Counted from the stretch's first letter, positions 1-62,682 are shown. The stretch: DNA of 64,000 nt from Basidiobolus meristosporus CBS 931.73 (GCA_002104905.1 MCFE01000444.1:1-64000), one strand, 5' to 3'. A program made the numbers and translations. Notes: generated by a model from the sequence alone, not told the origin.

Positions 1-3000
1 GCTTTTTGGGAGGCTGTGGCGCGCTTTCCTCGTCGTGTCACGTGCTTCATCTCCAACTCAAGCTCATCATCCGAAGCCATCGGCTCAGGGTCGTTCTTAC
101 GAGTGCGCTTGCGACGTCCGGATTTGACCTTTGGGGATTCATCGGCAACCTTACCCTCAGTGGGTTCGACCTTTTCCTCATCAGTGACATCGTGATCGGA
201 GGTTTCACGCTGGCCTCGACTTTCTCCACCGTTCTCTTGCTTCTTTTTGAAGCGCGAGTGATCGGCAGGGGTTCCGGAACAATCTCTGCCTCGGGTTGCT
301 CCTCGTCTTCTTGAGCGACCTTCCTGGATCTCTTTGAGCGGGTTTTGGTCGATCTCGACGAAGGTTCCTCTTCGTTGGACTCCTCGAGAGTACGTTTACC
401 GCGAGTCTTGATCTGGGCTCTTCACTGACATTGGCCTCGACGTGGCTAGGTTCCTCGGGCTTACTTTTCTTGGTCCTGCGTGTGGTCTTCCGTGGTTTGG
501 GGAGAGGCGCCTCCTCTTCTTGCTCCTCCTTCTCTTCTATGGGATCGGATTCCTCGATGGCAGCCTCGGGTTGGGGTGCCTCAACTTCGTGTTGCGGTTT
601 TGATTTCTGACGGGTAGAACGAGGACGGATGGGGGAGTCGACTTCCTCATGTTGGGTATCTTCATCAGGAACGGTATTAGTTCTGGTTGCCCTGGTTGAG
701 CGAGTGCGAGCAGGCTTGGATGTCTCCTGATTCTCGGATTGAGCGACTCGTTTGCTAGCTCTTACGGGGCGAGTCTGGTTAGCGCCATCCGAATTGGATT
801 CTGGATACTGAATAACTCTGTCACCCCTTCGGCGGGATCTAGTGGATCTGGCAAGGGTCACATTGGAGGTGGGCGAGGATTTCATTGGGGTATCATGCTC
901 ACTATGCTCCTCGGTTTCGCTAGAAACTTCTTGTTCGGGTTCCTTGCGCTTAGGGGTGGTTGCAACCTCGGCATCATTCACGTTCGGTTGATCGTCAGCT
1001 TCAGCGATCTCTGTGCCCTCATGGTCACTAGCTTCTGCTTCCTCTGGCAGTGCAACTTCGGAGACTTCTTCCGATTTGTCTTGTGGCTCGACATCCACCT
1101 CGGAATCTGCTTCATTGTCACTAGGTTGCTTTTCACCCACATTGTCCAATCCCATATCATCATGCTCGCTAACCACGGTTTCCTCTGGCTGTTTGAGGTG
1201 GGAGTCTTCAGGCAGTTGGTCTTCTGGCTCAACATTTTCGTTGGTTGCTTCTACATCCGATTCAACTTCTGGTTTAACATGGTCATCCGTGATATCAACT
1301 TCTGGCTGAGCTTCATCACTCTTCGCTTCATCCGACTCCATCTCTTCGTCATCACTGGGTTTCTCGGCACCTGCATTATCTGTAGCCATATCTTCATGAT
1401 CGCTAACCTCAGGTTCCTCAAGCTGTGCGACGTTGAGGCCTTCATCTAGCTTGTCTTCAGATTCGACATTTAGGTCTTCTGACTCAGCGTCAACAACCTT
1501 GGCATCCACGTCCAGGCCGTCCTCTGATTGAGCCTCATCATCCTTGGCATCAACCTCCGCATTGTCCAAAGCAAAATCTTCATGATCGCTAACCTCAAGC
1601 TGTGCAACGTCGGGATCTTCATCTGGCTTATCTTCAGATTCGACATTTCCGTCCTCTGACTTGGCATCGTCAGTGTTGGTATATGCATCCAGTTCGGCCT
1701 CTGACTGGGCCTCGTCGTCCTTAGCATCAACCTCTAGAGTGTCATGTGCCTCGACATCGGCTTCACCACTCAAATTCTCTTCGGGTAAAGCATCATCTGC
1801 TTCGTCGAGTTCATCTTGGTGCACGTTAACAGTGCCGTGTTCCTCGCCATTTTCATCGATTTGCTTATTATCGTCCGTCTCTTCGCCACTTTCGTTGTTG
1901 GGTGCTGTTCCTATCTCTTTCTCGCTCACATCGACAGCAACTTCATTCTGAAGAGTCTCTTCAGTCGCTTCTTGCTCAAATACCAACGTGCTAACATCCT
2001 CCTCCTCCTCCTCCTCCTCCTCCTCCTCATCATCATCATCGTTTGCTTGATTAAGATCGGCATTCTCCGAATCATTGATGACTTCCTCCTGATCTTCCAT
2101 ATCTTCATCTTGATCTTTTTCCTCGACTGCCTTGACATGTTCAACGATTTCGGTTGGGTCCTTGATAGGATCATCAAGAAGAACACCCTCCTCAAGTGGT
2201 TTGCCGGCTTCGACTGAGCCCGAAGGGTCGTTCTCGGGATCGAGGGGACCTGCAATATGCTCTACCTCTGCTTCCACCATTGCTTCATAGCTCACATCTG
2301 GAGTTTCCTCCTCGTTCAGTTCGGCAGCAGTTTCCCCGGACTCCTCTACGGCCAGTGGCTTTTGTTCAGCTTCCTCGTTAGTATTCTCCACCTCGGAATC
2401 GATATCCATCATAGTCTCATCGAGCTCGGAATCCTCTTTGCTGACGGTCACCACTTCTTGATTCGATTCGGAAATGGTGCCAAGCCCCTCCAGGCCTGCA
2501 ATGAAGTCGGAGAAATTAGCATCTTCTATATTAGCCTCGGTGGCTAGCGAGGCTTGGGGGGAGGGTGCGAGAGGAGAGTCTGCTACGCTACTTGTAGGAG
2601 TTACGTTGGAGCTAGGTGTACAAGTCGACTTCGCCGCCAGAGGGGATTCTGGTAGGTGGGCATCACTGCCGGGGGTCGGAGTAGATAGTAGGTTAGCGAT
2701 CGTTTCGCCTTCAATGAAACTTTCAGTATCCATATCCATATGCATGGATGGGGTTTTGCCGGACTGGCCAAGGTCCACCGCTCTTTGGCTAACAACGGAT
2801 TCCGCGTCTACGGTCAATGCGTTGATGGAATCTGGGGTGAAGAATTTCTCCTCGGACGCTTTAGGTGACGGGGTAGCGAAAAGATTGGCTATGGCCTCGC
2901 CTTCCCGGAGACTCTCACAAGTGTCCACAGTGGTGGTAAGCGGCTTGCGAGTTGGAGTGACCACATCGGGGAGTTGAAGAGTCGACGAAGGCGAATCGAC

Positions 3001-5360
3001 GGACATGGGGGAGTGTGGGCTTTCAAGGTTCCTGCTTGGAGGGGTGGCGAAAAGCTCGGCTATTTCCTGGCCTTGTCTGACACTTTCCGATAGGCTTCCG
3101 GAAGTAGGCATGGTTTGAGGAGTGGTGGGTGCGCTATCCTGCTCTACTGATATAGATGTATTCGGCGTTTGATCACCGCTTGCATCATCACCATCTCTGT
3201 CGTCATCTGTATGCGAATCAGATTCATCCTTCTCAACATTAGGAAATGTAGTGACTTCAGAGTCGGAAAGATCACCAGCTGGCGAGGATGGGCTTTCTTC
3301 GGGCTGCAGATTGGCAGCATCGGCGTCGCCATGGCTAGCCGTGACTTCCATTCTGTCGCCTGAGGTGTCAGAAGAGTGAACGGGCGAAACCATTGAGGTG
3401 TCGAAAAGCTCCGCAATAGCAATCCCTTCAGAAATGCTGTCCGAGGTGAATGTCGCCGAGAACGCTGGTGCTCGTTTCTCTGGTGTGGACAATCCATCTG
3501 CAGCTTCTTCGACGAAATCCTCTGACGCTTCGATACTCACGGTGATAAGGCTCTCGGATGAGGTGATTACGTTGCCAGGCTCAGCGGATGACAATTGCTC
3601 GGACCCATTATTACCGGTTAGAATGCTATCCTCGACCGGTTTTTCATCGCCATCCGTATTGGATTCTATCGTCTCTGACTCGTGATTGTCTTGCGATGGA
3701 TCTATGCTGTGCAAGAACTCCTTGGCCTCTTCGGCCAAATCAACACCCTCAGCAAAATCGTCGTTGGAATCCAATGTGATTGGGCTGCTTTCTTTCGCAC
3801 GGAATTGCTTCAGGACGTTCTTTAGCAATGAGGAGGATGGCGTGGTGGGTTTGGCGCAGACGGAGTCTCTCAGAGGGGTCTGCTTGATGGAAGGGGTGAT
3901 TCTACCCTTCTTCAGTGGAGAATTGGGTGGAAGCGCCTTGTCGAATATCTCCGGACTAAGATCTGGCCCGAATGTGACTCGACGTACAGATAAAGGCTCC
4001 GAGGCATCGGAGATCACGTCTCTTAATTTACTGTGTGATAATGCTGGGGTCCCGCTGGGAGTCTTCTTTCCTCGCTTGAGTGGAGAATTTGGAGGCAGAG
4101 TGCGGTCGTAAATCTCCGGGCTCAAGTCGGGCCCGAAAGTGACTTTGCGACGCGGATTCTCTTCCGTGGCATCATTGGTGGTGGTGACCGATGGCTCGGA
4201 ATGATCCTGCTCAGGCTTGATTGCTAGCAAGCTGGTGTGGTCCAGCAGTGAGGATCTCCGTCTTGAGGAACGGCGACCAGGTGAACGAGGTTGCATGAGC
4301 GACGTTGTATCCAATGACTTTCTCTTCTTAGAACTCGCACTGCTCAATAGGAGCAGCGCCTTGGGAAGCTTCGGAGATGCCTCGTTAGCATCAGCAATAT
4401 GGTCTTGCTTAGGCTCCTGGACTTTCTCCGTTGAATCCTCAGTCTTTACCTTCACATCACATGCTTCCATGTTGTTGATTACTGACGGGATTATCTCCAC
4501 GTTCTTGTGATCACTGGCCGCGTGAGCATTGGCGAGGATCTGGCTTGACTGGTTCAACTTGTCACTGATTGTATTCAGCTGACTTTCGCATTTGGCGATT
4601 GCATCCTCGGCTTTGATATGCAGGTCATCCATGTCTGGCTCCTCAGTCTTAAGCATGGAGAACGCAGAGTATTGCGTCTGGTCTTCTTGCTTGATTTGAC
4701 TCTCTCTGTAACTCTGGGCCGTACCCAGGATAGGCCTCACGCTTTTTTTGGATGGCTCGGTGAAAGGGGCCCTGGTGTGTCCCTTGACTTGATTTGTGAG
4801 GGGCGTGGTGGTGCGATTGAATGGTCGTGTGGATGATTTAAGTGGAGTGGCGGAGGCATTCGTTCTGCTGATGGGGCGAAGTGGTTTTGAAACATGTACG
4901 GTTGGCTGTGGCTTGGCCGCGTTCGGAGAGGAATACTCGAAACGGAAGGTTCGGTCGTGGATGGTGATGATATCTTTGTCATTCAGCGCTCTTCGGTCCT
5001 GCTCGCCGAGCTTCTCTCCATTGACCATGGTCCCGTTTTTGCTGAAATTGATAAGGGTAGCCTGCAACGGTGGGGACGATTAGCATCATCAGCCTCATGT
5101 TGTCGTCCAACTCGCCGCTTACCTGACCCTCTTTTTCGAAGGAAATTTTACAGTGGTTGTCGGCGATCTGAGGTAAGTATATACGAACATCGCAGGTGAG
5201 TTGCCTAGAGGTGAATGGTCAACTGCTATGCCCGTTATCAGCCATGAGAAACTTCAAACCATATTTACTTTCCGATAAGAAACTCCTTTTTGTTGATCGG
5301 AAAAGTCTTGAAGTCCCCGCCAACTCTACGGGTGACTATAAAGCTTCCATAATATCCCAT
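1..5360 (-). CDS. MKI67-like: Ki-67/RepoMan-like protein (FHA + two PP1-binding motifs + repeats), >1700 aa, 3' end outside the window
   Basis: Exons 5360-5269, 5204-5123 and 5061 onward, with GT..AG introns, splice to MGYYGSFIVTRRVGGDFKTFPINKKEFLIGKQLTCDVRIYLPQIADNHCKISFEKEGQATLINFSKNGTMVNG...DIITIHDRTFRFE. This aligns by eye with the Ki-67 FHA domain. Two RVTFGPDLSPE(I)xDxxLPPNSPLKxG motifs lie at ~4069-4152 and ~3906-3985. The frame is open to ~414, then two apparent 1-nt deletions (~414, ~207) separate natural-looking continuations that run to position 1. Confidence 0.85.
1388..1735 (-). repeat. Intragenic ~180-nt tandem duplication encoding acidic DAKDDEAQSE...VESEDK.DE...VAQLEVSDHED repeats
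   Basis: tcttcatgatcgctaacctc, cttcagattcgacatt and ctga(t/c)tg(a/g)gcctc(a/g)tc(a/g)tcctt each occur twice about 180 nt apart. Confidence 0.85.
1996..2040 (-). repeat. (CTC)n(ATC)n coding microsatellite giving a poly-Asp/poly-Glu tract
   Basis: Seen directly; translates as DDDDEEEEEEEEEED in the Ki-67-like frame. Confidence 0.95.
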
Positions 5361-5827
5361 GGTTCGAGTTTGTGCAAGTCGAAGGGACAACTAGAGCAGG
5401 ATCGGTTAGGCGGGCCGAATATATATATGTTTGGTGGGGTTGTGGCTAGCCTACCTGAAAACGTGCGGTGCTATGAAAGGAAAGGTTAGTAGAATGTGTT
5501 GAATGAGTCCACCCTCTATTTGCTCTTCAGTGGCTATTCCTTAATGTTCGTAAACTAGCAGTGGGAGATGTAAAGTGTGGCCGGTATCCTCCGCACAAAC
5601 TATTTATTAGCCATCACTCAAGTGTAAACATCCTATCGAGCGTAAACAAATCAGCCATGTTGTCATTGGGTTTTGTCCCTTGTTTTTCCACGCCGAGCCA
5701 ATCAGCCATCTAACCCTCTCTGGTGGACAACACTCATAACAAAAACAATCCGAATTTCCGCCAACTTGGCTATGTTTCTGATTCGATTTATTCAAGATTC
5801 ATCCTCCGAGGTGGCATTAATTTTACA

Positions 5828-13123: not shown

Positions 13124-16100
13124 TCAATACTTTGGTAATAGGCTAGGCCAATCTGATTCATGCACCAAGTTGAGTTGTGCAACTTGATCTAATCTTGATA
13201 AGGCATCAGCAACCGTGTTGTTTTTTCCAGGACAGTAGACAATCTCCAGGTCAAATTGCTGAATGTATTCACTCCATCTTGTCATTCTTCTAGAGAGTAC
13301 CTTCTGAGTAAATATATACTTGAGGGAGGCATGATCAGTCTTCACAGTGCATTTGACTCCTTCAATATAGCATCTTCATGTCTTCAAACAGTGTACTATA
13401 GCAAGCATCTCCTTCTCATGGACTGGATAGTTTTGTACTGCTGAGTTCAGTTTCTTGGATTCAAAGGCAACAGGGTAGTCCTTTCCCTCATGTTCTTGGC
13501 TCAACACTCCACCAATTGCATAATCTGAAGCATCTGTGTAGAGAGTGAACTCTTTTCTGAAGTCTGGTATTCCTAAGCTTGGCAGCTTAGCAAGTTCATT
13601 CTTGAATGTCTGGAAGGCAGTCTCACAAGCTATGTCCCACTTGTAGGTATTGTCTTTCTTGAGGATATCAGTTAAAGGGGCTGCAATACTTGCAAAAGAC
13701 TTGACAAATCTCCAATAATAGGAAAACATTCCAAGGAATGATCTGAGTTCTGATATGCTATGGGGCTGCTTCAAATTCTTGATAACTTCAACCGTCTTAG
13801 GGTCTAAGGTCACTCCGGTGCTAGTCACTGTGTGTCCCAGGTAGTCAACGTGTTTCTTGAAGAATTTACACTTGGCTAGCTTGCCATATAGCTTGTTCTC
13901 TCTTAGTTTCTTCAAGACCTTTTCAATGTGCACCATGTGATCCTCTTCTGTCTTGCTGTATATCAATATGTCATCCAGATAGATTATCACAAGCTTGTCT
14001 AAGTACTCCTGAAAGATGGTCTGCATCAGCGTCATGAATGTTGCAGGGGCATTAGTGAGGCCAAAACTCATGACCAAGTACTTGTAATGTCCATATCTGG
14101 TCCTGAATGCTGTCTTAGGGATATCTTCTGGTTTCACCCTAATCTGGTTGTATCCTGACATGAGGTCAATCTTGCTGAAAATAGTGGCTCCATTAGGTTG
14201 GTCCAAAAGCTCATCAATCCAAGGTATGGGGTACTTATTCTTGACGGTAACTGAGTTCAGGGCTCTGTAATCAATGCACATCCTAAGTGTTCCATCCTTC
14301 TTTTTCTCAAAAAGCACTGGTGCTCCCCAGGGTGACTTGCTGGGCCTGATGTATCCTTGCTCCAATAGCTGATCAATTTGTCTCTTCATTTCCTCCAATT
14401 CCAATGGGCTCATTCTGCAAGGTGTCTTGCTCACTGGAGGGCTATCTCCAGTGTCAATGGCATGATCCACATCTCTGACTGGTAGTAGGCTTACAAGCTC
14501 ATCTGGAAACACATCTGAGTATTTCTTCAAGAGAGTCTGAACCTGCTGGGGTGCTGGGGTAGAGGAATCCTCCTGTAATACCGCCATGAGGAACATCTCA
14601 GTACCTTTTCTAAGTGCTCTACAGAACTGGGTCATGCTAAGTTCACTTGTCTCACACATACTGGAATTGACCAAGTTGAAATCCAGCCTGGCAGGTAATA
14701 GCTCATAGGTCTTGTTGTTCTTTTGGAGCTGAGTAGCATGGGTTCTCCAGTTGATTGATGGATTACAACAAAATAGCCAGGTTTTCCAAGTACAAGGTCA
14801 AACTTGCAGTTCCCAAATATATAAGCCTGTAGGTCTTCTTCATAGTCATTGATCTTCATTCTTACTGGCTGAGTAATACGGTTGATTATGTGAGAGTTGC
14901 CATCAGTTGTTGAGACTGAAGTTTATTTGGTAGGTTCTGAGTTGATTCCAGCTTTCAGAGCAAATTGCTCTGACATGTACTCATGCAATGCTCCTGAGTC
15001 AATCATGATCTTGGCAGGTACTCCATTGATTACTCCATTCAGGTATAATAGCTTTCCTGAGTTTGAGGTCATGTGGGATAGGTATTCTTCTGTCATATGG
15101 AAGGTGAGTTCTGAGTCTTCTTCAAGCTCATCCTTCATGTTACTATGCTCCATGGCCTCAATACGGTTAAAGGTTCTTGATGGCTGGTGTCCATTTCTTC
15201 TCTGAGGGCAGTACTTTGCAATATGTCCTTGCTGGTAGCAATTGAAGCAAAGTCCTTTCTTCTTACATTCTTCCAAGGCAGGATTCTTCTGCATAGCATC
15301 TATTTCCATTGGTACTGCTTCTGACTGTCTTCTTTCATAATGATTGTAACCTTTCTGATTAGTCACTGTAGGCTTCCCAACTCCAAACATAGCTGAGTCA
15401 TAGTCAATGGCAATCTTGATGGCTTCTTCAATAGTCTGAGGTCTTCAATAATTCACTTCCTTGCAAGTTCTTTCTTTTAACCTATCAATAAAGTATTCAA
15501 CTTGATCCAGGGGGTCCATTCTTTCAATTTGTCCAAGTAGACATCTGTACTCATAGATGTATTCTTGAATCATTCCTTTCTGTCTGAGTGTCTTTAACTT
15601 CCTTCTTAGTAGTGTCTGCTGGTGTGGAGGTTCAAAAGCATCCTGAATTTCCAACACAAACTCATCCCAGGTAGAGATAGTAGAGCATCCCATCATAGTG
15701 GCTGACCTGATCTTGTTGTGGTACCACTGTAAAGCTGCATCTGCCAGGTAAGAAGCTGCATAATGCAACTTGCTTTCTGGAGCAATTCCTTTAGCTTTGA
15801 AAGCTTCTTCAATCTGAAAGAGCCAAGTCCCCAGGTTTTCATTGACTCTGCCATGGTACCAGTTGACCTTCACACTAAAGTTGCTCTTGACAGGGCTTTG
15901 CTGGCTCTGAGCCATGGTAGTCATTCCTTGTTGCTGTTGGCTGAGGATCTGGAGTAAATGTTGCTGTTGGGCCAGGATTTGCTGCATGGCAATCTTCCAT
16001 TCTTGATTGTCCAACATCTTGAGGGTGGTTTCTTCTTTCTTCAGGAGGGAGGTTTCCGGTATTTGCTGCTACCAATGTTACAAGTCTTTGTATAAGAGTT

Positions 16101-23986: not shown

Positions 23987-24274
23987 GTATTTTCTCAGAA
24001 AGGAAAGTGACTTCCAAATAAGGAAAAGTTAATAAAAAGTAAATAAGCTCATTAGTAAACAGAAGGTCAGAATGCTACTGTAGAAGCAATAAACACTGCC
24101 TATAGTATATTTTGAGCCTAGGTTGAGGAAATTAGTGAAAGTTATATCTTCTATTGGTATATCAAACTCCCAATAAACTATTTCAGTATTAGCATACTGG
24201 AAATTGTTGTATAGTGTTGATTAGCCTCTACATTGTCAAATAAGCCCCAAACTAATCATAATACAACTCAACAC

Positions 24275-26929
24275 ATCAACCTTCTTAGGGTCTAAGGTCA
24301 CTCCTGTGCTAGTCACTATATGTCCCAGGTATTCAATGTGTACCTTGAAGAATTTACACTTGGCTAGCTTGCCATATAGCTTGTTCTCTCTTAGTCTCTT
24401 CAAGACCTTTTCAATGTGCACCATGTGATCCTTTTCTGTCTTGCTGTATGTCAATATGTCATCCAGGTAGATTATCACAAACTTGTCCAAGTACTCCTGA
24501 AAGACAGTCTGCATCAGCGTCATGAATGTTGCAGGGGCATTAGTGAGGCCAAAACTCATGACTAAGTACTTGTAATGTCCATATCTGGTCCTGAATGCTG
24601 TCTTAGGGATATCTTCTGGTTTCACCCTAATCTGGTTGTATCCTGACATGAGGTCAATCTTGCTGAAAATAGTGGCTCCATTAGGTTGGTCCAAAAGCTC
24701 ATCAATCCAAGGTATGGGGTACTTATTCTTGACGGTAACTGAGTTCAGGGCTCTGTAATCAATGCACATCCTAAGTGTTCCATCCTTCTTTTTCACAAAA
24801 AGCACTGGTGCTCCCCAGGGTGACTTGCTGGGCCTGATGTATCCTTGCTCCAATAGCTGATCAATTTGTCTCTTCATTTCCTCCAATTCCAATGGGCTCA
24901 TTCTGTAAGGTGTCTTGCTCACTGGAGGGCTATCACCTGTGTCAATGGCATGATCCACGTCTCTGACTAGTGGTAGGCTTACAAGCTCATCTGGAAACAC
25001 GTCTGAGTATTTCTTCAAGAGAGTCTGGACCTGCTGGGGTGCTGGGGTAGAGGAATCCTCCTGTAATACCACCATGAGGAACATCTGAGTACCTTTTCTA
25101 AGCGCTCTACAGAATTGGGTCTTGCTAAGTTCACTTGTCTCGCACATACTGGAATTGACCAAGTTGAAATCCAGCCTGGCAGGTAATAGCTCATAGGTCT
25201 TGTTGTTCTTTTGGAGCTGAGTAGCATGGGTTCTCCAGTTGATTGATGGATTACAACAAAATAGCCAGGTTTTCCAAGTACAAGGTCAAACTTGCAGTTC
25301 CCAAATATATAAGCCTTTAGGTCTTCTTCATAGTCATTGATCTTCATTCTTACTGGCTGAGTAATACGGTTGATTATGTGAGAGTTCCCATCAGCTGTTG
25401 AGACTGAAGTTGATTTGGTAGGTTCTGAGTTGATCCCAGCTTTCAGAGCAAATTGCTCTGACATGTACTCATGCAATGCTCCTGAGTCAATCATGATCTT
25501 GGCAGGTACTCCATTGATTACTCCATTCAGGTATAATAGCTTTCCTGAGTTTGAGGTCATGTGGGATAGGTATTCTTCTGTCATGTGGAAGGTGAGTTCT
25601 GAGTCTTCTTCAAGTTCATCCTTCATGTTACTATGCTCCATGGCCTCAATACGGTTAAAGGTTCTTGATGTCTGGTGTCCATTTCTTCTCTGAGGGCAGT
25701 ACTTTGCAATATGTCCTTGCTGGTGGCAATTGAAGCAAAGTCCTTTCTTCTTACATTCTTCCAAGGCAGGATTCTTCTGCATAGCATCTATTTCCATTGG
25801 TACTGCTTCCAACTGTCTTCTTTCATAATGATTGTAACCTTTCTGATTAGTCACTGTAGGCTTCCCAACTCCAATATAGCTGAGTCATAGTCAATGGCAA
25901 TCTTGATGGCTTCTTCAATAGTCTGAGGTCTTTGATAATTCACTTCCTTGCAAGTTCTTTCTTTCAACCCATCAATAAAGTATTCAGCTTGATCCAGGGG
26001 GTCCATTCTTTCAATTTGTCCAAGTAGACATCTGTACTCATTTATGTATTCTTGAACCATTCCTTTCTGTCTGAGTGTCTTTAACTTCCTTCTTAGTAGT
26101 GTCTGCTGGTGTGGAGGTTCAAAAGCATCCTGAATTTCTGACACAAACTCATCCCAGGTAGAGATTGTAGAGCATCCCATCATGGTGGCTGATCGGATCT
26201 TGGTGTGTACCACTGTAAGGCTGCATCTGCCAGGTAGGAAGCTGCATAATGCAACTTGCTTTCTGGAGCAATTCCTTTAGCTTTAAAAGCTTCTTCAATC
26301 TGAAAGAGCCAAGTTCCAGGTTTTCATTGACTCTGCCATGGTGCTGGTTGACCTTCACACTAAAGTTGCTCTTGACAGGGCTTTGCTGGCTCTGAGCCAT
26401 GGTAGTCATTCCTTGTTGCTGTTGGCTGAGGATCTGGAGTAACTGTTGCTGTTGGGCCAGGATTTGCTGCATGGCATTCTTCCATTCTTGATTGTCCAAC
26501 ATCTTGAGGGTGGTTTCTTCTTTCTTCAGGAGGGAGGTTTTTGGTTATTGCTGCTACCAATGTTACAAGTCTTGGTATAAGAGTTGTAGAAGAATAGGGA
26601 GTTTAGCCAGTATTGTATTCACTAAAACTTGAACTGATCTTTATTGAGGTTCCAGCAGCTCCTTATATACATTTTGCCAGATCAATTGCTGACTAATTGT
26701 ATTTCCTAATGTAGGTTGTGGCTGATGACTTGTTTGATTGCATCATCATCACCCAATAAGATTCCACTTTATATATCTATTTTTGTCTGATAAGGATCTG
26801 CTGATTCATTTGCTTACTAATGTTACTGATATGATAGATAATACTGATATACTGATAACCTAAACATATAACTAATTGATTTGACTAAAAACTGATCTAA
26901 CTTAAATATTCAGGTGGCAGATCATAACA
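24275..26929 (-). mobile_element. Ty3/gypsy G1 copy 2 (5' LTR, gag, PR, RT; truncated in the RT connection region)
   Basis: LTR 26561-26929 with TGTTA...TAACA, PBS TTGGTAGCAGC, CCHC knuckle, DSGA and YLDD. Closely similar to copy 1. Confidence 0.93.
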
Positions 26930-34237: not shown

Positions 34238-37200
34238 TGTTGCAATTTAAGAAGTGATTTGGATATAAGGAACTTATCAAGAAATAGTGATAATAGTTGA
34301 AGTGTTGTTTATTCATAAAGAAGCTCAGTATTTATACCTTTGTAGAAGTAATACTGCTGCAACACTAAGTAGGGAGGGTTTCTCAATATTCAGGAGCATT
34401 CTGTAACAGTTTCAGGGTTAGTACATAATGTTTGGTAATAGTGCTAATTTGATCCTGACTATAGGGGAATAATCATAAGATCATATATCTGGAGAAAGTG
34501 GCAAAGTTAAGGGAGTAAATGAGTCCTACACTGACTAAGACTAGCCTAGAATTGTTAAGTAAATTTTTAGCTGCTGAATGATACCAAATAGTCCAATATT
34601 TCAACACTCCCCCTCAACTAAATAATTTCTTAATCCCAATCTCTCTCTAAGGATCTCAAACTGTGGCCTAGCTAGTGGTTTTGTCAATATGTCTGCCACC
34701 ATTTTGTCAGTTGGGCAGTAAACCAGCTCTACTAAGTTATTTTCTACAGCTTCCCTCACAAAGTGATGCTGTATATCAATGTGCTTAGTTCTGGCATGAC
34801 TAGTAGGATTTCTAGCTAATGAAATACAACTTTGATTATCCTTGTAAATACATGTTGGTTCACCTGAATTAAAACCTAAGTCTTTGAATAATTTTTGTAG
34901 CCATATAGCCCCCTTAGTTGCTTGACATGCAGCCATATATTCGGCTTCAGTTGTAGATAGTGCCACAGTTAGTTGTTTCTTGCAATTCCAAGTAATAGCT
35001 GCACCAGCATAAAGAAATACATAGCCTGTGGTAGAGCGTCTGTCAATCAAATCCCTACCCCAATCTGAATCACTATAACCATCAAATTTTTGCCCATTAG
35101 CTGCTCCAGAGTATTCCAGTACCATATTTATGGTACCTTGTAGATATCTGAAAATCCGCTTAACTGCTGCAATTTGATCTGATCCAAAATTCTGCATGAA
35201 TTGACCGACTATTCCAACTGCTACTGCAATAACTGGACATGTAGACACCATCAAGTACATTAGGCTACCGACCATTGATTGATAGGGAAAGTTTTGGTCC
35301 ATATTTGAGCTGTTTTCATCTATAACTGGCTGAGATTTGCTTAATTTCAGGTTATTGTCCATAGGGGTTGCTGCAGGCTTGCAATTTTCCATTTTGAAGC
35401 GTCTAAGAGTGTCCCTGATGCACTTAGACTGATTCAGCACAATTTTCTGCGTAGGTATGTCAAATTTGACCTCAATTCCAAGAAAATAGCTCAATTTTCC
35501 AAGATCTTTCATCTCAAACTTGCTGAAGAGATCTGATTTTGTCTGTTTAAGTGCCTCTTGATCACTTGTAGCTATAATTAGGTCATCCACATAAAGAACT
35601 AGGATGATCACACCCTTTTTGAGCTGTTTCACATATATACTGTGATCTGCAGTGCTACAAGAGAACCCAATTTCCTCTAGATATGTGTCAATCTTGTTAT
35701 ACCATGCTCTGGGTGCCTGCTTAAGCCCATACAACGATTTTCTAAGTTTGCACACCTTATGGGGCTTTTTGAAAAAAACCTTCTGGTTGCTCCATATATA
35801 TAGTTTCTTGCAAATCCCCATTTAGAAAGGCTGTTTTGACGTCCATTTGGTGTAGATCTAGACTGTGTACAGCTGCCAGGGCTAGAACTGTCCTAATAGA
35901 GTTAAACTTGGTAACCGGAGCAAATGTTTCCTTAAAGTCTAGTCCCTGGATCTGGGAATAGCCTTTAGCTACCAATCTAGCCTTGTACTTATCAACAGCA
36001 CCATTTGAGGTTATCTTGATCTTGTAGACCCATCTACATCCTATTGGCTTTCTCCCATTTGGTAAATCTACCAGTTCCCACGTTTTTGCCTTGATCAGTG
36101 ATTGGTACTCCTCCTGCATGGCTTGTTGCCACTTATTAGCATCTGGACCTTGCATTGCCTGTTCCAGATTCTGAGGTTTGGCACATAAGGCAAGATAAGC
36201 TTCTTCATGATCATAGGATGTCTGCCACCAGGATCCAAGGGCATTTCTTGTTCTGGTAGATCTCCTAACTGGGATAATCTGTTCTGATCTGGAACTGGTA
36301 GAAGTATCTTCCATCTCTGGCTGGATTTGGTACGTATCTTCTTCATTTGTGTTGATTGCATCATCAGGCAGCTGGCCAATGATTTCTGTGGCTTTCTGAT
36401 CTGAATTCTCCTCAAATACAACGTCCCTGCTCTTGATCAGCTTCTGAATTTCGCCATCATACACTCTATACCCTTTAGTATCTTCACAATACCCAAGAAA
36501 GATCCCTTTTCTACTCTTTGGTTCCAACCTTGAGCGTTTTTTGTCAGGGATGTGATAAAAAACATCACTGCCAAAGATCCTGAGGTGCTGGAGATCTGGT
36601 TTTTTGCCTGTATATGCTTCAAAGGGTGTAGAATCACGTAGTGCTGTTGTTGGGCATCTGTTCTTGATGTATACAGCGGTAGCAACAGATTCCGCCCAAA
36701 ACTTTTAGTCCATTCCCTTATCATGTAGCATAGATCTTCCCATCTCTACTATTGTTCTATTTGCACGTTCTGCTACTCCATTTTGCTGTGGAGTATGAGG
36801 AACTGTGGTCTGTTGAAGTATACCAGTAGACAAGCAGTACTTTGCAAACTGGCTTAGTAAAAACAAATTTCAGTCCCTGTGTAGTTGCTTTACTGACTGA
36901 GAGTAGGTTCTTAGCTATTCCAGGTACATAGAGTACGTCAGTCAGTTTTGCTGTTGTTGCCCCTGAGTTATCACTCATATTTAGTTGTATAGACCCACTG
37001 GCGGTAGCTTCCAATGCAGAGTTATCTCCCAGATAAACCTTTCTTACGGGAATAGTCTTTAAGTTGCTGAACCAATCCTTTATACCACAAATATGCTGTG
37101 ATGCTCCAGAGTCAATATACCATTCATTACTTTCGTTACTTGCACTCTCTTGTACAGTGACAAATAACTGTTCATCAGTAGTTATATGGTTTGCCTGCTC

Positions 37201-38364
37201 TAGTTTCTGTTTTTTGTCTGCTTGTTTCTTCTTGCATTCTCTTGCCCAGTGTCCTGGCTTCTTACAGTAGTTATAGCAGCCAGGTTTTCTTCGGTTTTGT
37301 TGCTTTCCCTTCTTTTCTGTATGCCTTTCTGAACTAAATAAAGCATTATCTTCAATTTTCTCTGCTTGATCATTATGTCTGAGTTCTTCATGGAGAAGTC
37401 TTCCTTTGACATAGTCTAAAGTCAAGTTGTCTTCTCTGCTTTCAAAAGAAAGTATGAGTGGCTCATACTTGTCTGGTAGGCTGCAAAGCAGACAGAGTAT
37501 CTTTTCTTCATCATCTACACCAGCATTAATACTGTAAAGTTCTTCTGCAAGTGTCTCCATTCTGGTAATGAGTTGTAGCATGTCATCATCTGGCTTTTTT
37601 CTCATGTTGAAGAACTTTTGTTTCAAATACAGCTTGCTTGATACTGACTTTGCTCTAAAGATCTTCTCTAAGGATTCCCATGCTGCTTTGGCAGTATTTG
37701 AGGCATGGATTTGTCCAATGAAGGAGTCTTGCACATTGATGCATATTGCATTGAAGGCCTTTCTCTCCTTCTCTTGAAACTTCTCCACATCTTCTGCTGT
37801 TCCTTTGGGCTCAACTTCATTTCCTGTTACTATGTTCCAAAGCTTTCTTTCCTCAAGGTGGATCTGCATCTTGATTCTCCAAAGTCTGTAGTTCTTCCCA
37901 TCAAACCTCTCCTTTATAGGGAAGATGTTGGTATTGCTTTGTTTGCTGGTAGAAGTCATCTTTAGAAAAGATTAAGGCAATCGGGGCTCATAACCTGTTG
38001 CAATTTAAGAAGTGATTTGGATATAAGGAACTTATCAAGAAATAGTGATAATAGTTGAAGTGTTGTTTATTCATAAAGAAGCTCAGTATTTATACCTTTG
38101 TAGAAGTAATACTGCTGCAACACTAAGTAGGGAGGGTTTCTCAATATTCAGGAGCATTCTGTAACAGTTTCAGGGTTAGTACATAATGTTTGGTAATAGT
38201 GCTAATTTGATCCTGACTATAGGGGAATAATCATAAGATCATATATCTGGAGAAAGTGGCAAAGTTAAGGGAGTAAATGAGTCCTACACTGACTAAGACT
38301 AGCCTAGAATTGTTAAGTAAATTTTTAGCTGCTGAATGATACCAAATAGTCCAATATTTCAACA
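34238..38364 (-). mobile_element. Young, non-autonomous Ty1/copia CopA (4127 bp)
   Basis: 369-bp LTRs (34238-34606, 37996-38364) with no difference found by eye; TSD TTTCC; PBS GGTTATGAGCCC; PPT GAGGGGGAG. Motifs: gag CNYCKKPGHWAREC, PR WYIDSGAS, INT QNGVAERANR, RT LYVDDLII, RNase H ADILTK. About 560 bp of integrase is deleted, with one stop and one frameshift. Confidence 0.97.
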
Positions 38365-61305: not shown

Positions 61306-62682
61306 ATGAGCGCCCCTTCTGAGCCCATTCCTACATATTCCTCAGGAGACATCGCTTGGGTCATGGTCTCCACTAGTCTTATCTTTCTTATGATCCCGGG
61401 GGTGGGGTATTTTTACAGTGGACTGGCGCGCTCCAAAAATGCGCTTTCCCTGATCATGTTGAGCTGCTTGTCGGTGGCAGTGGTGGTGGTTCAATGGTTC
61501 ATCTGGGGATACTCCCTTTGCTTTGGGAAAAGCGGCAACCCGTTCATCGGAAACCTGGACCACGCCTTTCTTAGAGATGTCATGGATGGGCCAAGCATCG
61601 GCAGCCCCAAAATCCCTGATCTCGCCTTCATGATTTACCAGTGTATGTTTGCAGCCATCGCCCCTGCTCTAGCCGTCGGGGCCTCAGCTGAGCGGGCTCG
61701 TATTCTGCCCACCATAGTGTTCATCTTCATCTGGTCAACCCTTGTCTACGATCCCATAGTATACTGGACTTGGTCACCTGATGGTTGGTTGATGAAGTTG
61801 GGCAACCTCGATTTCGCGGGTGGGACCCCCATCGAAATCTGTTCCGGGGTTGCTGCCCTGGCGTACGCGGTCAAAGTTGGCAAAAGACAAGGACACGGCA
61901 CCGACGAATTCAAAGCTCACAACATGTCCAACGTTGTCCTGGGCACCGCTTTTCTTTGGTTTGGGTGGTTTGGCTTCAACGGTGGATCCGCTCTTACCGG
62001 ATCCATGAGGGCCGTCATGGCCATTGTAGTGACCAACATCTCAGCCTCGGCCGGAGCATTGTCATGGGTGATCATCGACTACTTTCGTACTGGACGCAAA
62101 TTTTCGGCCTTCGCATTCTGCTCTGGTGCGGTTGCTGGGCTGGTTGCCATCACACCCGCCTCAGGATTTGTGGGGCCAGCTCCCGCATTGTTGATTGGAG
62201 TGTGCGCCGGCACCGCCTGTAACTACGCCCGGCACCTGAACCACCTGTTCAATTTCGATGACGCCTTGGATGTGTTTGCCGTCCACGCTGTCGGAGGCAT
62301 TCTTGGCAACATCCTCACCGGAATCTTTGCCGAGCAGAGAATTGCCGCCTTGGATGGAACGGTTATTGCCGGCGGGTGGTTGAACGGCCACTTCATTCAG
62401 GTTGCCTACCAACTCGCCGCTAGTGCAGCAGGGTTTGCCTGGACATTCGTTGTCACCTACATCATTCTGTGGGTGATGGACAGGATCCCTGGATTGAGTC
62501 TTCGCACCGACGCTGAGAGTGAAAGACTCGGCCTGGATCTCACGGAGTTGGGGGAATCCGCGTACCATCACGTAGAATGCACCATAGCCAGCAATAACCC
62601 CAGTAAGGCCACGGTCACCGAGATCACCGTAGACTCCATCAACAGAGAAAAAGAAACCAACCTGCATTGGAACGCGTCGTAA
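61306..62682 (+). CDS. MEP/amt: Ammonium transporter, Mep/Amt family (intronless, 458 aa)
   Basis: Motifs: LMIPGVGYFYSGL, FMIYQCMFAAI, WSTLVYDPI..W.W..DGWL, DFAGGTP, FLWFGWFGFNGGS, GAVAGLVAITPASG, DDALDVFAVH and the C-terminal ExxGLDxxELGE. Confidence 0.97.
   Translation: MSAPSEPIPTYSSGDIAWVMVSTSLIFLMIPGVGYFYSGLARSKNALSLIMLSCLSVAVVVVQWFIWGYSLCFGKSGNPFIGNLDHAFLRDVMDGPSIGSPKIPDLAFMIYQCMFAAIAPALAVGASAERARILPTIVFIFIWSTLVYDPIVYWTWSPDGWLMKLGNLDFAGGTPIEICSGVAALAYAVKVGKRQGHGTDEFKAHNMSNVVLGTAFLWFGWFGFNGGSALTGSMRAVMAIVVTNISASAGALSWVIIDYFRTGRKFSAFAFCSGAVAGLVAITPASGFVGPAPALLIGVCAGTACNYARHLNHLFNFDDALDVFAVHAVGGILGNILTGIFAEQRIAALDGTVIAGGWLNGHFIQVAYQLAASAAGFAWTFVVTYIILWVMDRIPGLSLRTDAESERLGLDLTELGESAYHHVECTIASNNPSKATVTEITVDSINREKETNLHWNAS

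Follow-up and report, generated by a model that had tools for sequence, protein, structure and literature searches.

The closest described relatives of the protein studied here are vertebrate Ki-67, fungal bridgin and RepoMan/CDCA2. Ki-67 is a highly basic protein characterised by an FHA domain, a PP1-binding domain, tandem Ki-67 repeats bearing the Ki-67 motif and a C-terminal LR domain that binds chromatin; it localises to the perichromosomal layer or the nucleolar rim and recruits PP1 in anaphase (Remnant et al. 2021, PMC8354752). The PP1-binding domain is made up of RVxF, PhiPhi and KiR-SLiM elements (Kumar et al. 2016). [quoted passage not shown] 2021, PMC7794384). Bridgins were recognised by an N-terminal FHA, a variable disordered region and a C-terminus of ~300 residues with a pI of about 10 or more, and the resulting homologue table includes a Jimgerdemannia protein and is blank for Basidiobolus meristosporus (Sridhar et al. 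2021, PMC7794384). Fungal Ki-67-like proteins have also been listed in a recent preprint (Haider et al. 2026).

The window (the whole 64,000-nucleotide stretch of DNA that was analysed, from the early-diverging fungus B. meristosporus) contains a minus-strand gene. Sequence reading and a script place its ATG at 5360 and give it two coding introns followed by a large last exon; in the window's own frame it encodes a protein of 1676 aa. The gene features given below are on the minus strand. The coding part of exon 1 (5269-5360, 92 nt, FHA residues 1-31) is followed by intron 1 (5205-5268, 64 nt, GT..AG), exon 2 (5123-5204, 82 nt, FHA residues 31-58, containing CDVRIYLPQIADNHCKI), intron 2 (5062-5122, 61 nt) and exon 3 (1-5061), which ends with a stop at 205-207 in the window's frame. 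Both predicted coding introns are exactly skipped by a spliced cDNA-like contig of sequencing run X3, confirming the gene model. The same contig matches 5455-5540 and resumes at 5390, thereby defining a 5'-UTR exon (5455-5540) and a 64-nt 5'-UTR intron (5391-5454) with ends reading CT..AC on the plus strand and GT..AG on the minus strand; the transcript extends to at least 5540. The nearest relative, a B. ranarum protein named 'Antigen identified by monoclonal antibody Ki-67' (GCA_040143965.1, JASJQH010000392.1), also has coding exons of 92 and 82 nt, with introns at identical positions. The Basidiobolus window gene is real, transcribed and spliced, and its absence from public protein sets makes it an addition of the present analysis.

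The FHA domain begins at residue 1 and extends to residue 103 (4927-5360, split by the two coding introns), and was assigned to the Ki-67 type from PDB matches, bit scores and alignment. When the exon pieces of the window FHA were compared separately with the PDB, human Ki-67 was the best match of each. The complete B. ranarum FHA, which is 82% identical to that of the window, matched human Ki-67 (2AFF/1R21) with an E-value of 3e-14 and the next family, CHFR, with 3e-5, a lead of nine orders of magnitude with this domain as the query; Pfam FHA scored 51 bits on the same homologue. After splicing, the window FHA gave 60-80 bits against family members from fish, tunicate, isopod and fungi; its identity to the FHA of a fish Ki-67 is 43%, and other fungal homologues are equally similar. 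The FHA tree was poorly resolved, its nearest row outside Basidiobolus being Jimgerdemannia. With regard to the pThr pocket, 117 of 128 family members carry the phosphate-binding Arg and 113 of 128 the Ser, whereas the window FHA has Lys31 and Ala45 instead; because of these replacements, its binding of phosphopeptides may be weak or altered.

Downstream of the FHA, Pfam PP1_bind matched two stretches of the window protein (E 1.4e-23), and the RVxF-PhiPhi-KiR-SLiM module of Ki-67 and RepoMan is complete in two tandem copies. The first (residues 363-397, 4045-4149) comprises KVTF, EI and YDRTLPPNSPLKRGKKTP, as judged by Pfam, a local profile (78.6 bits) and the published motif; the second (residues 418-449, 3889-3984) comprises RVTF, EI and FDKALPPNSPLKKGRITP, as judged by the same three sources and by PDB matches. 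The only convincing PDB matches of this segment were the RepoMan (5INB, E 2e-8) and Ki-67 (5J28, E 7e-8) peptides crystallised with PP1. A fourth PDB chain among the matches, Crov588, contained no stretch that passed by itself. The published KiR motif, FDxxLP(P/A)N(T/S)PL(R/K)(R/K)Gx(T/S)P, fits both copies, except for one extra residue ahead of the final TP and an F>Y change in copy 1. In both modules the x of RVxF is Thr, and S/T-P sites lie within each. In human Ki-67 and human RepoMan this Thr is the Aurora B switch position, in RepoMan the S/T-P sites inside the module are the CDK1 switch positions, and the crystal structures of both show such modules binding PP1 one-to-one. It is therefore likely, as far as these motifs can tell, that the window protein binds PP1.

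The rest of the protein is dominated by an acidic block of 945 residues (residues 501-1445, 901-3735) with 30% D+E, presumably disordered as judged by its composition. Residues 521-1420 have a net charge of -230 and a pI of 4.05, and the acidic core (residues 901-1445) alone reaches 38% D+E and a net charge of -182, leaving the whole protein strongly acidic (pI 4.36, net charge -207). Within the block, Tandem Repeats Finder detected 1.8 copies of a 177-nt (59-residue) tandem repeat (residues 1168-1274, 1416-1734), and a (TCC)n run at 1997-2028, at which the Logan contigs break, encodes a stretch of Glu (residues 1070-1080). Pattern counts and profiles identified a motif of ~20 residues, S-x-x-E/Q-G-x-x-I-A-E/N-L-F/L-x-T-P, in four dispersed copies between residues 597 and 857 (2665-3447). 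Their core (IAELFATP type) resembles the Ki-67 motif, which in the human protein terminates in FKELFQTP. None of 5000 shuffles reached four such ELFxTP-type motifs (mean 0.06, maximum 2), and a pattern built from the window's own three instances matched 13 vertebrate-type Ki-67 representatives where 0.007 were expected; profile scores for the motif were weak (4.3 bits or less). The Pfam Ki-67 repeat (K167R) was not found in the window protein at E<=1, nor were tandem repeats of ~120 residues. The protein then turns basic. Composition and motif count delimit the first part of a basic tail (208-900; residues 1446-1676 as read in the window's own frame), which can be aligned to the opening portion of the basic tail, 470 residues long, in the B. 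ranarum homologue. It contains three R[ST]TR motifs (at 1463, 1512 and 1539; 0.04 expected), and residues 1421-1676, an incomplete domain cut by the window edge, have a pI of 10.14. The alternative open frame given by the reads is also K/R-rich here.

Every element named in an earlier note on this DNA is thus present, on the minus strand: the Ki-67-like FHA, the Ki-67/RepoMan PP1-docking motifs, the repeated ELFxTP-type motifs, the huge acidic middle and the basic tail with RSTR-like motifs. The last ~70 residues as read, however, are probably out of frame (see below). The 'full Ki-67 architecture' it proposed goes too far: the FHA and the PP1 module support it, and the HMM searches recovered PP1_bind on the window protein and FHA on the B. 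ranarum homologue, but K167R is missing at the threshold given above, the protein is acidic and its layout equals that of bridgin. Ki-67 homology and a PP1-targeting role are nevertheless well founded, given the subtype of the FHA and the specificity of the module.

Set against vertebrate Ki-67, the window protein shares an N-terminal FHA of the same subtype, the RVxF-PhiPhi-KiR-SLiM module downstream of it, a long disordered body with many S/T-P sites in a single huge exon, a repeated motif with the core hydrophobic-A/K-E/N-L-F-x-T-P and a basic C-terminal region. The overall charge, however, is opposite, the vertebrate protein being highly basic; the proposed Drosophila homologue is negatively charged too (Haider et al. 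2026). In the window protein four dispersed short motifs stand in place of K167R tandem repeats of ~120 residues, the PP1 module is doubled, Lys31/Ala45 take the place of Arg/Ser in the FHA pocket, no similarity to the LR domain was noted, and it is about half as large. Bridgin (Bgi1) of Cryptococcus neoformans, compared by its published description, is likewise fungal and combines an N-terminal FHA and a PP1 site soon after it with a long acidic unstructured domain that has repeats of its own and with a basic domain at the C-terminus, its pI values of 4.65 (USD) and 11.2 (BD) corresponding to 4.05 for the acidic middle and 10.1 for the basic tail of the window protein. Bridgin differs in having a PP1 site reported to be unconventional, where the window protein has two full KiR modules, and in that its repeats are acidic octamers and not ELFxTP-type motifs. 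RepoMan/CDCA2 provides the closest solved match to the PP1 module; like the window protein, it has an RVTF whose Thr occupies the Aurora B position, as well as SP/TP sites within the module. Tetrapod CDCA2 has neither an FHA nor an acidic block, both of which are present here, and a protein of this type was ruled out by the N-terminal FHA, the architecture being that of Ki-67/bridgin. Since an elephant-shark CDCA2-like protein does bear an FHA, the data suggest that CDCA2 derived from the same FHA-bearing ancestor. The B. ranarum homologue shares the two PP1 modules with conserved flanking islands and the ELF-type and RSTR-type motifs, but it is 1430 aa long, basic overall (pI 9.25) and only 29% identical to the window protein over the full length; it may be an orthologue or a paralogue. 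As this homologue has no hyper-acidic block, the block may be dispensable for the conserved function.

An FHA followed by the same KiR module was also found in Cladochytrium, Podila, Haplosporangium, Entomortierella, Coemansia and Jimgerdemannia, and in a sponge, a spider, an isopod, a tunicate and fish Ki-67. The combination thus extends over chytrid, Mortierellomycota, Kickxellales, Endogonales, sponge, arthropod, tunicate and vertebrate lineages, with homologues of this architecture in at least five fungal lineages. The presence, across fungal phyla, of a full KiR module behind the FHA is, as read from these sequences, an addition of the present analysis. The window protein is almost certainly a member of the Ki-67/bridgin family. 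Given an architecture common to fungi and animals, the family, with vertebrate Ki-67 and RepoMan/CDCA2 as kin, probably arose at or before the fungus-animal ancestor and so predates the split, in line with the earlier suggestion of an origin toward the opisthokont ancestor. The novelty then envisaged has to be given up, because fungal Ki-67-like proteins ('bridgin') were published with their Ki-67 homology between 2021 and 2026, and the name Ki-67 is already in use at NCBI for the B. ranarum homologue and for several early-diverging fungi. The protein is a good new member of an already published family, not a new kind of system.

We consider it probable that the window protein serves as a long, mostly disordered, chromatin-associated scaffold. 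The basic tail would bind DNA or chromatin non-specifically, the acidic, S/T-P-rich disordered part would project off the chromatin, the FHA would dock a phosphoprotein partner, and the two KiR modules could supply chromatin with at most two PP1 catalytic subunits as mitotic kinase activity drops. The scaffold may either coat the whole chromosome as Ki-67 does or be concentrated at kinetochores as bridgin is. A purely bridgin-like function, with no coating of the chromosome periphery, is the strongest alternative, although we regard it as rather unlikely. Cryptococcus bridgin is the only fungal member characterised by experiment and works in this fashion; in how its charge is distributed (acidic middle, basic tail, acidic overall) the window protein resembles bridgin and not the basic vertebrate Ki-67, and the features used in the bridgin search are found here, namely the N-terminal FHA, an acidic, repeat-bearing middle (disordered by composition) and a basic C-terminus, the last being incomplete. 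On the other hand, the protein contains two canonical KiR modules and SLiMs resembling the Ki-67 motif. CENP-A and CENP-C homologues are given for B. meristosporus (Sridhar et al. 2021, PMC7794384), so there is no obvious linker loss that needs compensation. Moreover, the nuclear envelope fragments in Basidiobolus mitosis, the nucleolus is very large and the chromosomes are small and numerous, making a perichromosomal role plausible, and one role would not preclude the other. Within the scaffold reading, a doubtful, more speculative version is that of a naturally charge-inverted Ki-67: a chromatin-anchored amphiphile, with a basic tail, a constitutive negative brush of about -230 and two PP1 docks, might individualise many small chromosomes in an envelope-fragmenting mitosis without CDK-driven charge reversal. 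If the charge-inverted version were true, the hydrophobic-A-E/N-L-F-x-T-P 'Ki-67 motif' would be an ancient SLiM with a conserved partner, older than the fungus-animal split.

With regard to the C-terminal end, runs X1, X2 and X3 each carry one G more than the window in two G runs, after 211 and after 414, and the frame of the stretch between these two 1-base differences (211-414, read contigs) is uncertain. In the X1-X3 version the frame stays open past window position 1, to the left of which the X3 cDNA contig continues for 850 nt and the X1 genomic contig for 2129 nt. The stop codon itself is altered in the relative X4, and related organism C has A207>G and no stop. The window stop at 205-207 is therefore doubtful, the earlier reading has probably taken its last ~70 residues from the wrong frame, and the gene continues beyond the window edge; its C-terminus here is incomplete, cut off at that edge, and uncertain in frame. 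Being one G short at both places, the window has two frame shifts and a stop relative to three runs, and two contig records of the read-contig search reveal a paralogue in the same genome; both points could indicate a decaying or truncated allele (pseudogene) instead of a functional gene. We find this improbable, since both differences are changes in G-run length, a pattern typical for assembly errors, the upstream 1607 codons are all open, the open-frame version is carried by the cDNA-like X3 contig, which differs from the locus at only about 5 positions in 3 kb, and organism C does not have the stop.

The idea that the FHA protein is unrelated and its RVxF motifs arose by chance, or that animal DNA contaminated or was transferred into the fungal assembly, could appeal to the frequency of generic RVxF motifs among disordered proteins and to the equal closeness of the window FHA to fish Ki-67 and to other fungal homologues, but it is effectively refuted, as the match spans the whole module of ~30 residues twice, the introns are short, fungal in type and common to B. 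ranarum, homologues of the same architecture occur in other fungi, and the same contig encodes an ammonium transporter of Basidiobolus type, in keeping with the fungal origin that had been suspected and with a genome that is that of Basidiobolus.

On the minus strand, the left edge of the window carries a genuine, well-supported member of the Ki-67/bridgin family in Basidiobolus. A long open frame occupies 205-5067, and translation of its 5' region in all three frames, with scripted junctions, gave a model with the start codon at 5360, exon 1 at 5360-5269, a 64-nt GT..AG intron at 5268-5205, exon 2 at 5204-5123, a 61-nt GT..AG intron at 5122-5062 and exon 3 running down from 5061. The product has 1676 aa when read in the frame of the window. 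When contigs of the four listed sequencing runs (X1 to X4, the last from a more distant relative) were aligned to 1-5600, X3 alone behaved as cDNA. One X3 contig of 3341 nt, extending to 5540, skips 5062-5122 and 5205-5268 exactly, as well as a 64-nt intron in the 5'-UTR (5391-5454, minus strand). It should be underlined that the run behind this splicing evidence is labelled 'DNA?', that its contigs lack the introns and that no RNA run is among those listed for the gene. The nearest relative, a B. ranarum protein named as a Ki-67 antigen at NCBI, likewise has exons of 92 and 82 nt. Together, the skipping of the introns in the X3 contig and the equal exon lengths in B. ranarum confirm the gene model and show a gene that is transcribed and spliced. 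The B. ranarum contig terminates 653 nt upstream of its homologue, and the window terminates within its gene.

The 3' end is affected by two sites at which X1, X2 and X3 have one extra G relative to the window, after 211 and after 414, both in G runs. With these two bases the stop at 205-207 disappears and a K/R/E-rich open frame runs past window position 1; in X4 the stop codon itself is altered (A207>G). The one-G deficits are probably homopolymer assembly errors producing a false frameshift and stop. The final ~70 residues, as read in the frame of the window, probably reflect a misassembly and less likely a truncated allele. Beyond position 1, the cDNA contig continues for 850 nt and a genomic contig for 2129 nt. 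In B. ranarum the basic tail has 470 residues, and the window tail aligns with its initial part; 1676 aa is therefore a minimum length.

The earlier note had recognised an FHA domain of the Ki-67 type, and structure-database comparisons bear this out. Taken alone, the pieces in exon 2 and exon 3 each matched the human Ki-67 FHA (2AFF/1R21) best among solved structures, and the complete B. ranarum FHA (Pfam FHA, 51 bits; 82% identical to that of the window) matched the Ki-67 FHA in the PDB with an E-value of 3e-14, against 3e-5 for CHFR, the next family. The family call rests on this gap and not on the FHA tree (128 rows x 108 columns), in which 64 of the 125 inner branches were open, the fungal clade was not placed and support was limited to the pair formed by the window and B. 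ranarum. For the spliced window FHA, comparisons with fish Ki-67, a tunicate Ki-67-like protein, an isopod 'antigen Ki-67' and fungal proteins gave 60-80 bits; its identity was 43% to a fish Ki-67 FHA and 30-41% to other fungal homologues. On sequence evidence, the FHA fold can be regarded as settled. At two canonical phosphate-binding positions, Arg is found in 117 and Ser in 113 of 128 family members; the window FHA has Lys31 and Ala45, and that of B. ranarum Lys31, Ser45 and Gln48. Since similar departures are scattered across the family, they weaken the case for phosphopeptide binding and leave family membership unaffected.

The PP1-docking motifs of Ki-67 and RepoMan (CDCA2) that had been noticed by eye proved to be two copies of a complete module. 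Pfam PP1_bind matched exon 3 in two stretches (E 1.4e-23), and a comparison of the segment with all PDB sequences gave convincing matches only to RepoMan (5INB and 5IOH, E 2e-8) and Ki-67 (5J28, E 7e-8), the peptides of which were crystallised on PP1-gamma; Crov588 (6NYR) was also listed, with no stretch that passed alone. According to Kumar et al. (2016), the module consists of RVxF, PhiPhi (EL/EV) and the KiR-SLiM FDxxLP(P/A)N(T/S)PL(R/K)(R/K)Gx(T/S)P, in this order, the x of RVxF being an Aurora B phosphorylation site and CDK1 sites being located within the module. Copy 1 (residues 363-397) matches this motif except for a change of F to Y and one additional residue ahead of the final TP, and copy 2 (residues 418-449) except for the additional residue; in both, the Aurora position is still occupied by Thr and the CDK positions by SP/TP. 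A chance RVxF reading was considered and rejected, the match being to a complete module of ~30 residues, found twice. Two equally strong tandem modules were seen in Basidiobolus only among the family proteins profiled. Alligator and emu CDCA2 (P0134 and P0166) have a second, degenerate module of ~20 bits, located ~100 residues N-terminal to the main copy, and tandem duplication is therefore not unique to Basidiobolus.

The modules are flanked by two islands (residues ~286-345 and 462-496; minus-strand DNA ~4201-4380 and 3748-3852) in which the window protein and that of B. ranarum are almost the same. One contains a KKRK stretch and RRSSRRRSSLLDH, the other SSSLLKNVLKxFRAKESSPITLD; they had no matches in other family members, their conservation being limited to Basidiobolus.

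Downstream of the modules, the motif S-x-x-E/Q-G-x-x-I-A-E/N-L-F/L-x-T-P occurs four times in residues 597-857 of the window protein (mean 0.06 in shuffled controls, with four copies in 0 of 5000) and twice in the B. ranarum homologue. The earlier note likened these motifs to Ki-67, where the human motif ends in AGFKELFQTP. This part of the claim stands, as the pattern [ILMV]A[EN][ILM][FL].TP, derived from the window instances only, was found in 13 other family representatives against 0.007 expected, all 13 carrying a fish- or tetrapod-type PP1 string and representing related vertebrates rather than independent events. Pfam K167R, the model of the Ki-67 repeat, gave no match to the window protein. 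A profile of the six Basidiobolus instances was weak (at most 4.3 bits, compared to 1.1 for reversed controls), and the fixed-pattern test is the more informative of the two. In other fungi, a relaxed pattern gave single matches within chance expectation. As judged from sequence, the resemblance to the Ki-67 motif is real; its basis is a short core and a set of related vertebrate sequences.

The acidic middle and basic tail with RSTR-like motifs, also described earlier, are evident from the composition. Residues 101-500 are mildly basic and S/T/P-rich, and 37 of 43 S/T-P sites fall in residues 101-900. Asp and Glu make up 30% of residues 501-1445 and 38% of the acidic core (residues 901-1445; net charge -182), whereas the tail from residue 1421 onward has a pI of 10.1; the whole protein has a pI of 4.36 and a net charge of -207. 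R[ST]TR occurs three times in the window tail against 0.04 expected, and shows a modest excess across the family tails (13 versus 2.3 +/- 1.5). The acidic block contains a 59-residue tandem repeat and a Glu run. It is fast-evolving and may be lineage-specific, because it is indel-rich in X4 and missing from the B. ranarum homologue, which has a pI of 9.25.

When the first 525 residues of the B. ranarum protein were searched exhaustively with HMMER against 1.84 billion representatives, 420 proteins were returned at E<=1e-3. The sole match below 1e-30 was the query itself, with no other near-identical protein among these representatives; the window protein and its in-genome paralogue are therefore absent from that collection. 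Word-index searches recovered B. ranarum and CDCA2 proteins only, and neither the window protein nor the paralogue had a close match in either of the two public protein collections searched. Named animal matches included fish Ki-67, tunicate and sponge 'Ki-67-like' proteins, isopod and spider 'antigen Ki-67' and CDCA2. Those from Coemansia, Podila, Haplosporangium and Entomortierella already bear the NCBI name 'antigen identified by monoclonal antibody Ki-67', and further fungal matches came from Jimgerdemannia and the chytrid Cladochytrium, in both of which Pfam finds FHA and PP1_bind. With a local profile, the complete RVxF-PhiPhi-KiR module was found downstream of the FHA in all named matches. 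One protein with 23 matched stretches (P0071) was discarded as a spurious, unrelated repeat protein. The diverged paralogue lies elsewhere in the genome, on an X1 genomic contig of 15,984 nt and a spliced, cDNA-like X3 contig of 3,055 nt, which match window 5267-5360 (exon 1, 14 differences) and 5118-5149 (part of exon 2). An elephant-shark protein (P0086, Callorhinchus milii, annotated as CDCA2 or uncharacterised) combines an N-terminal family FHA (Pfam 34.7 bits) with a RepoMan-type PP1 module (PP1_bind 65.8 bits), which points to an FHA-bearing, Ki-67-like ancestor of RepoMan/CDCA2, with loss of the FHA in tetrapods.

The proposal that the Ki-67 system dates back toward the opisthokont ancestor is correct but not new, having already been published. 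Sridhar et al. (2021; PMC7794384) described Cryptococcus bridgin as having an FHA, a putative PP1 site, an acidic unstructured domain (USD) and a basic domain (BD) for which the human Ki-67 basic region can substitute, and named Ki-67 as its metazoan homologue; their table spans several fungal phyla, Dictyostelium and vertebrate Ki-67, the entry for B. meristosporus being blank. A 2022 review called bridgin 'a Ki-67-like protein' and proposed a common ancestor. Haider et al. (2026; bioRxiv 10.64898/2026.06.18.733134) reported Ki-67-like proteins in tunicates, sponges, insects, fungi (Malassezia, Mycoemilia, Paramicrosporidium) and non-opisthokonts, using a generic RVxF pattern only and mentioning neither KiR nor RepoMan. 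With Ki-67 outside animals already published, the importance of the window gene is modest; it fills the gap recorded for B. meristosporus in the 2021 survey. The RVxF-PhiPhi-KiR module, which a 2016 report confined to Ki-67 and RepoMan, is discussed for fungi neither by Sridhar et al. (2021) nor by Haider et al. (2026), and follows the FHA as a complete 30-residue unit in several fungal phyla, duplicated in Basidiobolus. Not described in the family literature compared are the duplicated canonical KiR modules, the Ki-67-motif-like SLiM and the hyper-acidic block. The window protein shares its charge layout with bridgin (USD pI 4.65, BD pI 11.2), whereas vertebrate Ki-67 is basic and thus opposite in charge; the bridgin repeats are acidic octamers, unrelated to the ELFxTP-type motif.

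What is established for this gene is its homology, its architecture, its expression and the integrity of a PP1 module whose regulatory positions are conserved. By analogy with bridgin and Ki-67, the basic tail may bind chromatin; PP1 recruitment would be gated by the cell cycle, possibly with two PP1 per protein, and the FHA would engage a phosphoprotein partner. As far as sequence goes, the protein could act at the chromosome periphery or at the kinetochore. Robinow (1963) and Adl et al. (2019) describe the nuclei of Basidiobolus as unusually large, with a large nucleolus at the centre and numerous small chromosomes, and according to Adl et al. (2019) the mitotic nuclear content is bounded by membrane fragments only. 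These features make a Ki-67-like perichromosomal role plausible. With its giant nucleus and envelope-fragmenting mitosis, Basidiobolus might serve as a test organism for whether chromosome coating, as by Ki-67, or kinetochore bridging, as by bridgin, is ancestral.

The fungal character attributed to the sequence is confirmed by an intact, single-exon ammonium transporter on the plus strand at 61306-62682 (Pfam Ammonium_transp, E 9e-120), whose best matches, after the window's own protein, are from B. meristosporus (81% identity) and B. ranarum (79%), with Mucoromycota next. As its best matches are from Basidiobolus, the window derives from a Basidiobolus genome, and contamination by animal DNA was rejected on account of this Basidiobolus-type gene on the same contig and of the short, fungal-type introns that the Ki-67-like gene has in common with B. 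ranarum. Outside these genes the window is rich in gypsy- and copia-type retroelements, and over large parts of it long ORFs are otherwise few. Retrotransposon remnants lie at 13376-14674, 24236-25854 and 34601-37959; two have RVT_1 reverse-transcriptase ORFs, the first of them also RT-RNaseH domains (gypsy-type), and one copia-type element carries gag, Pol_BBD and RVT_2.
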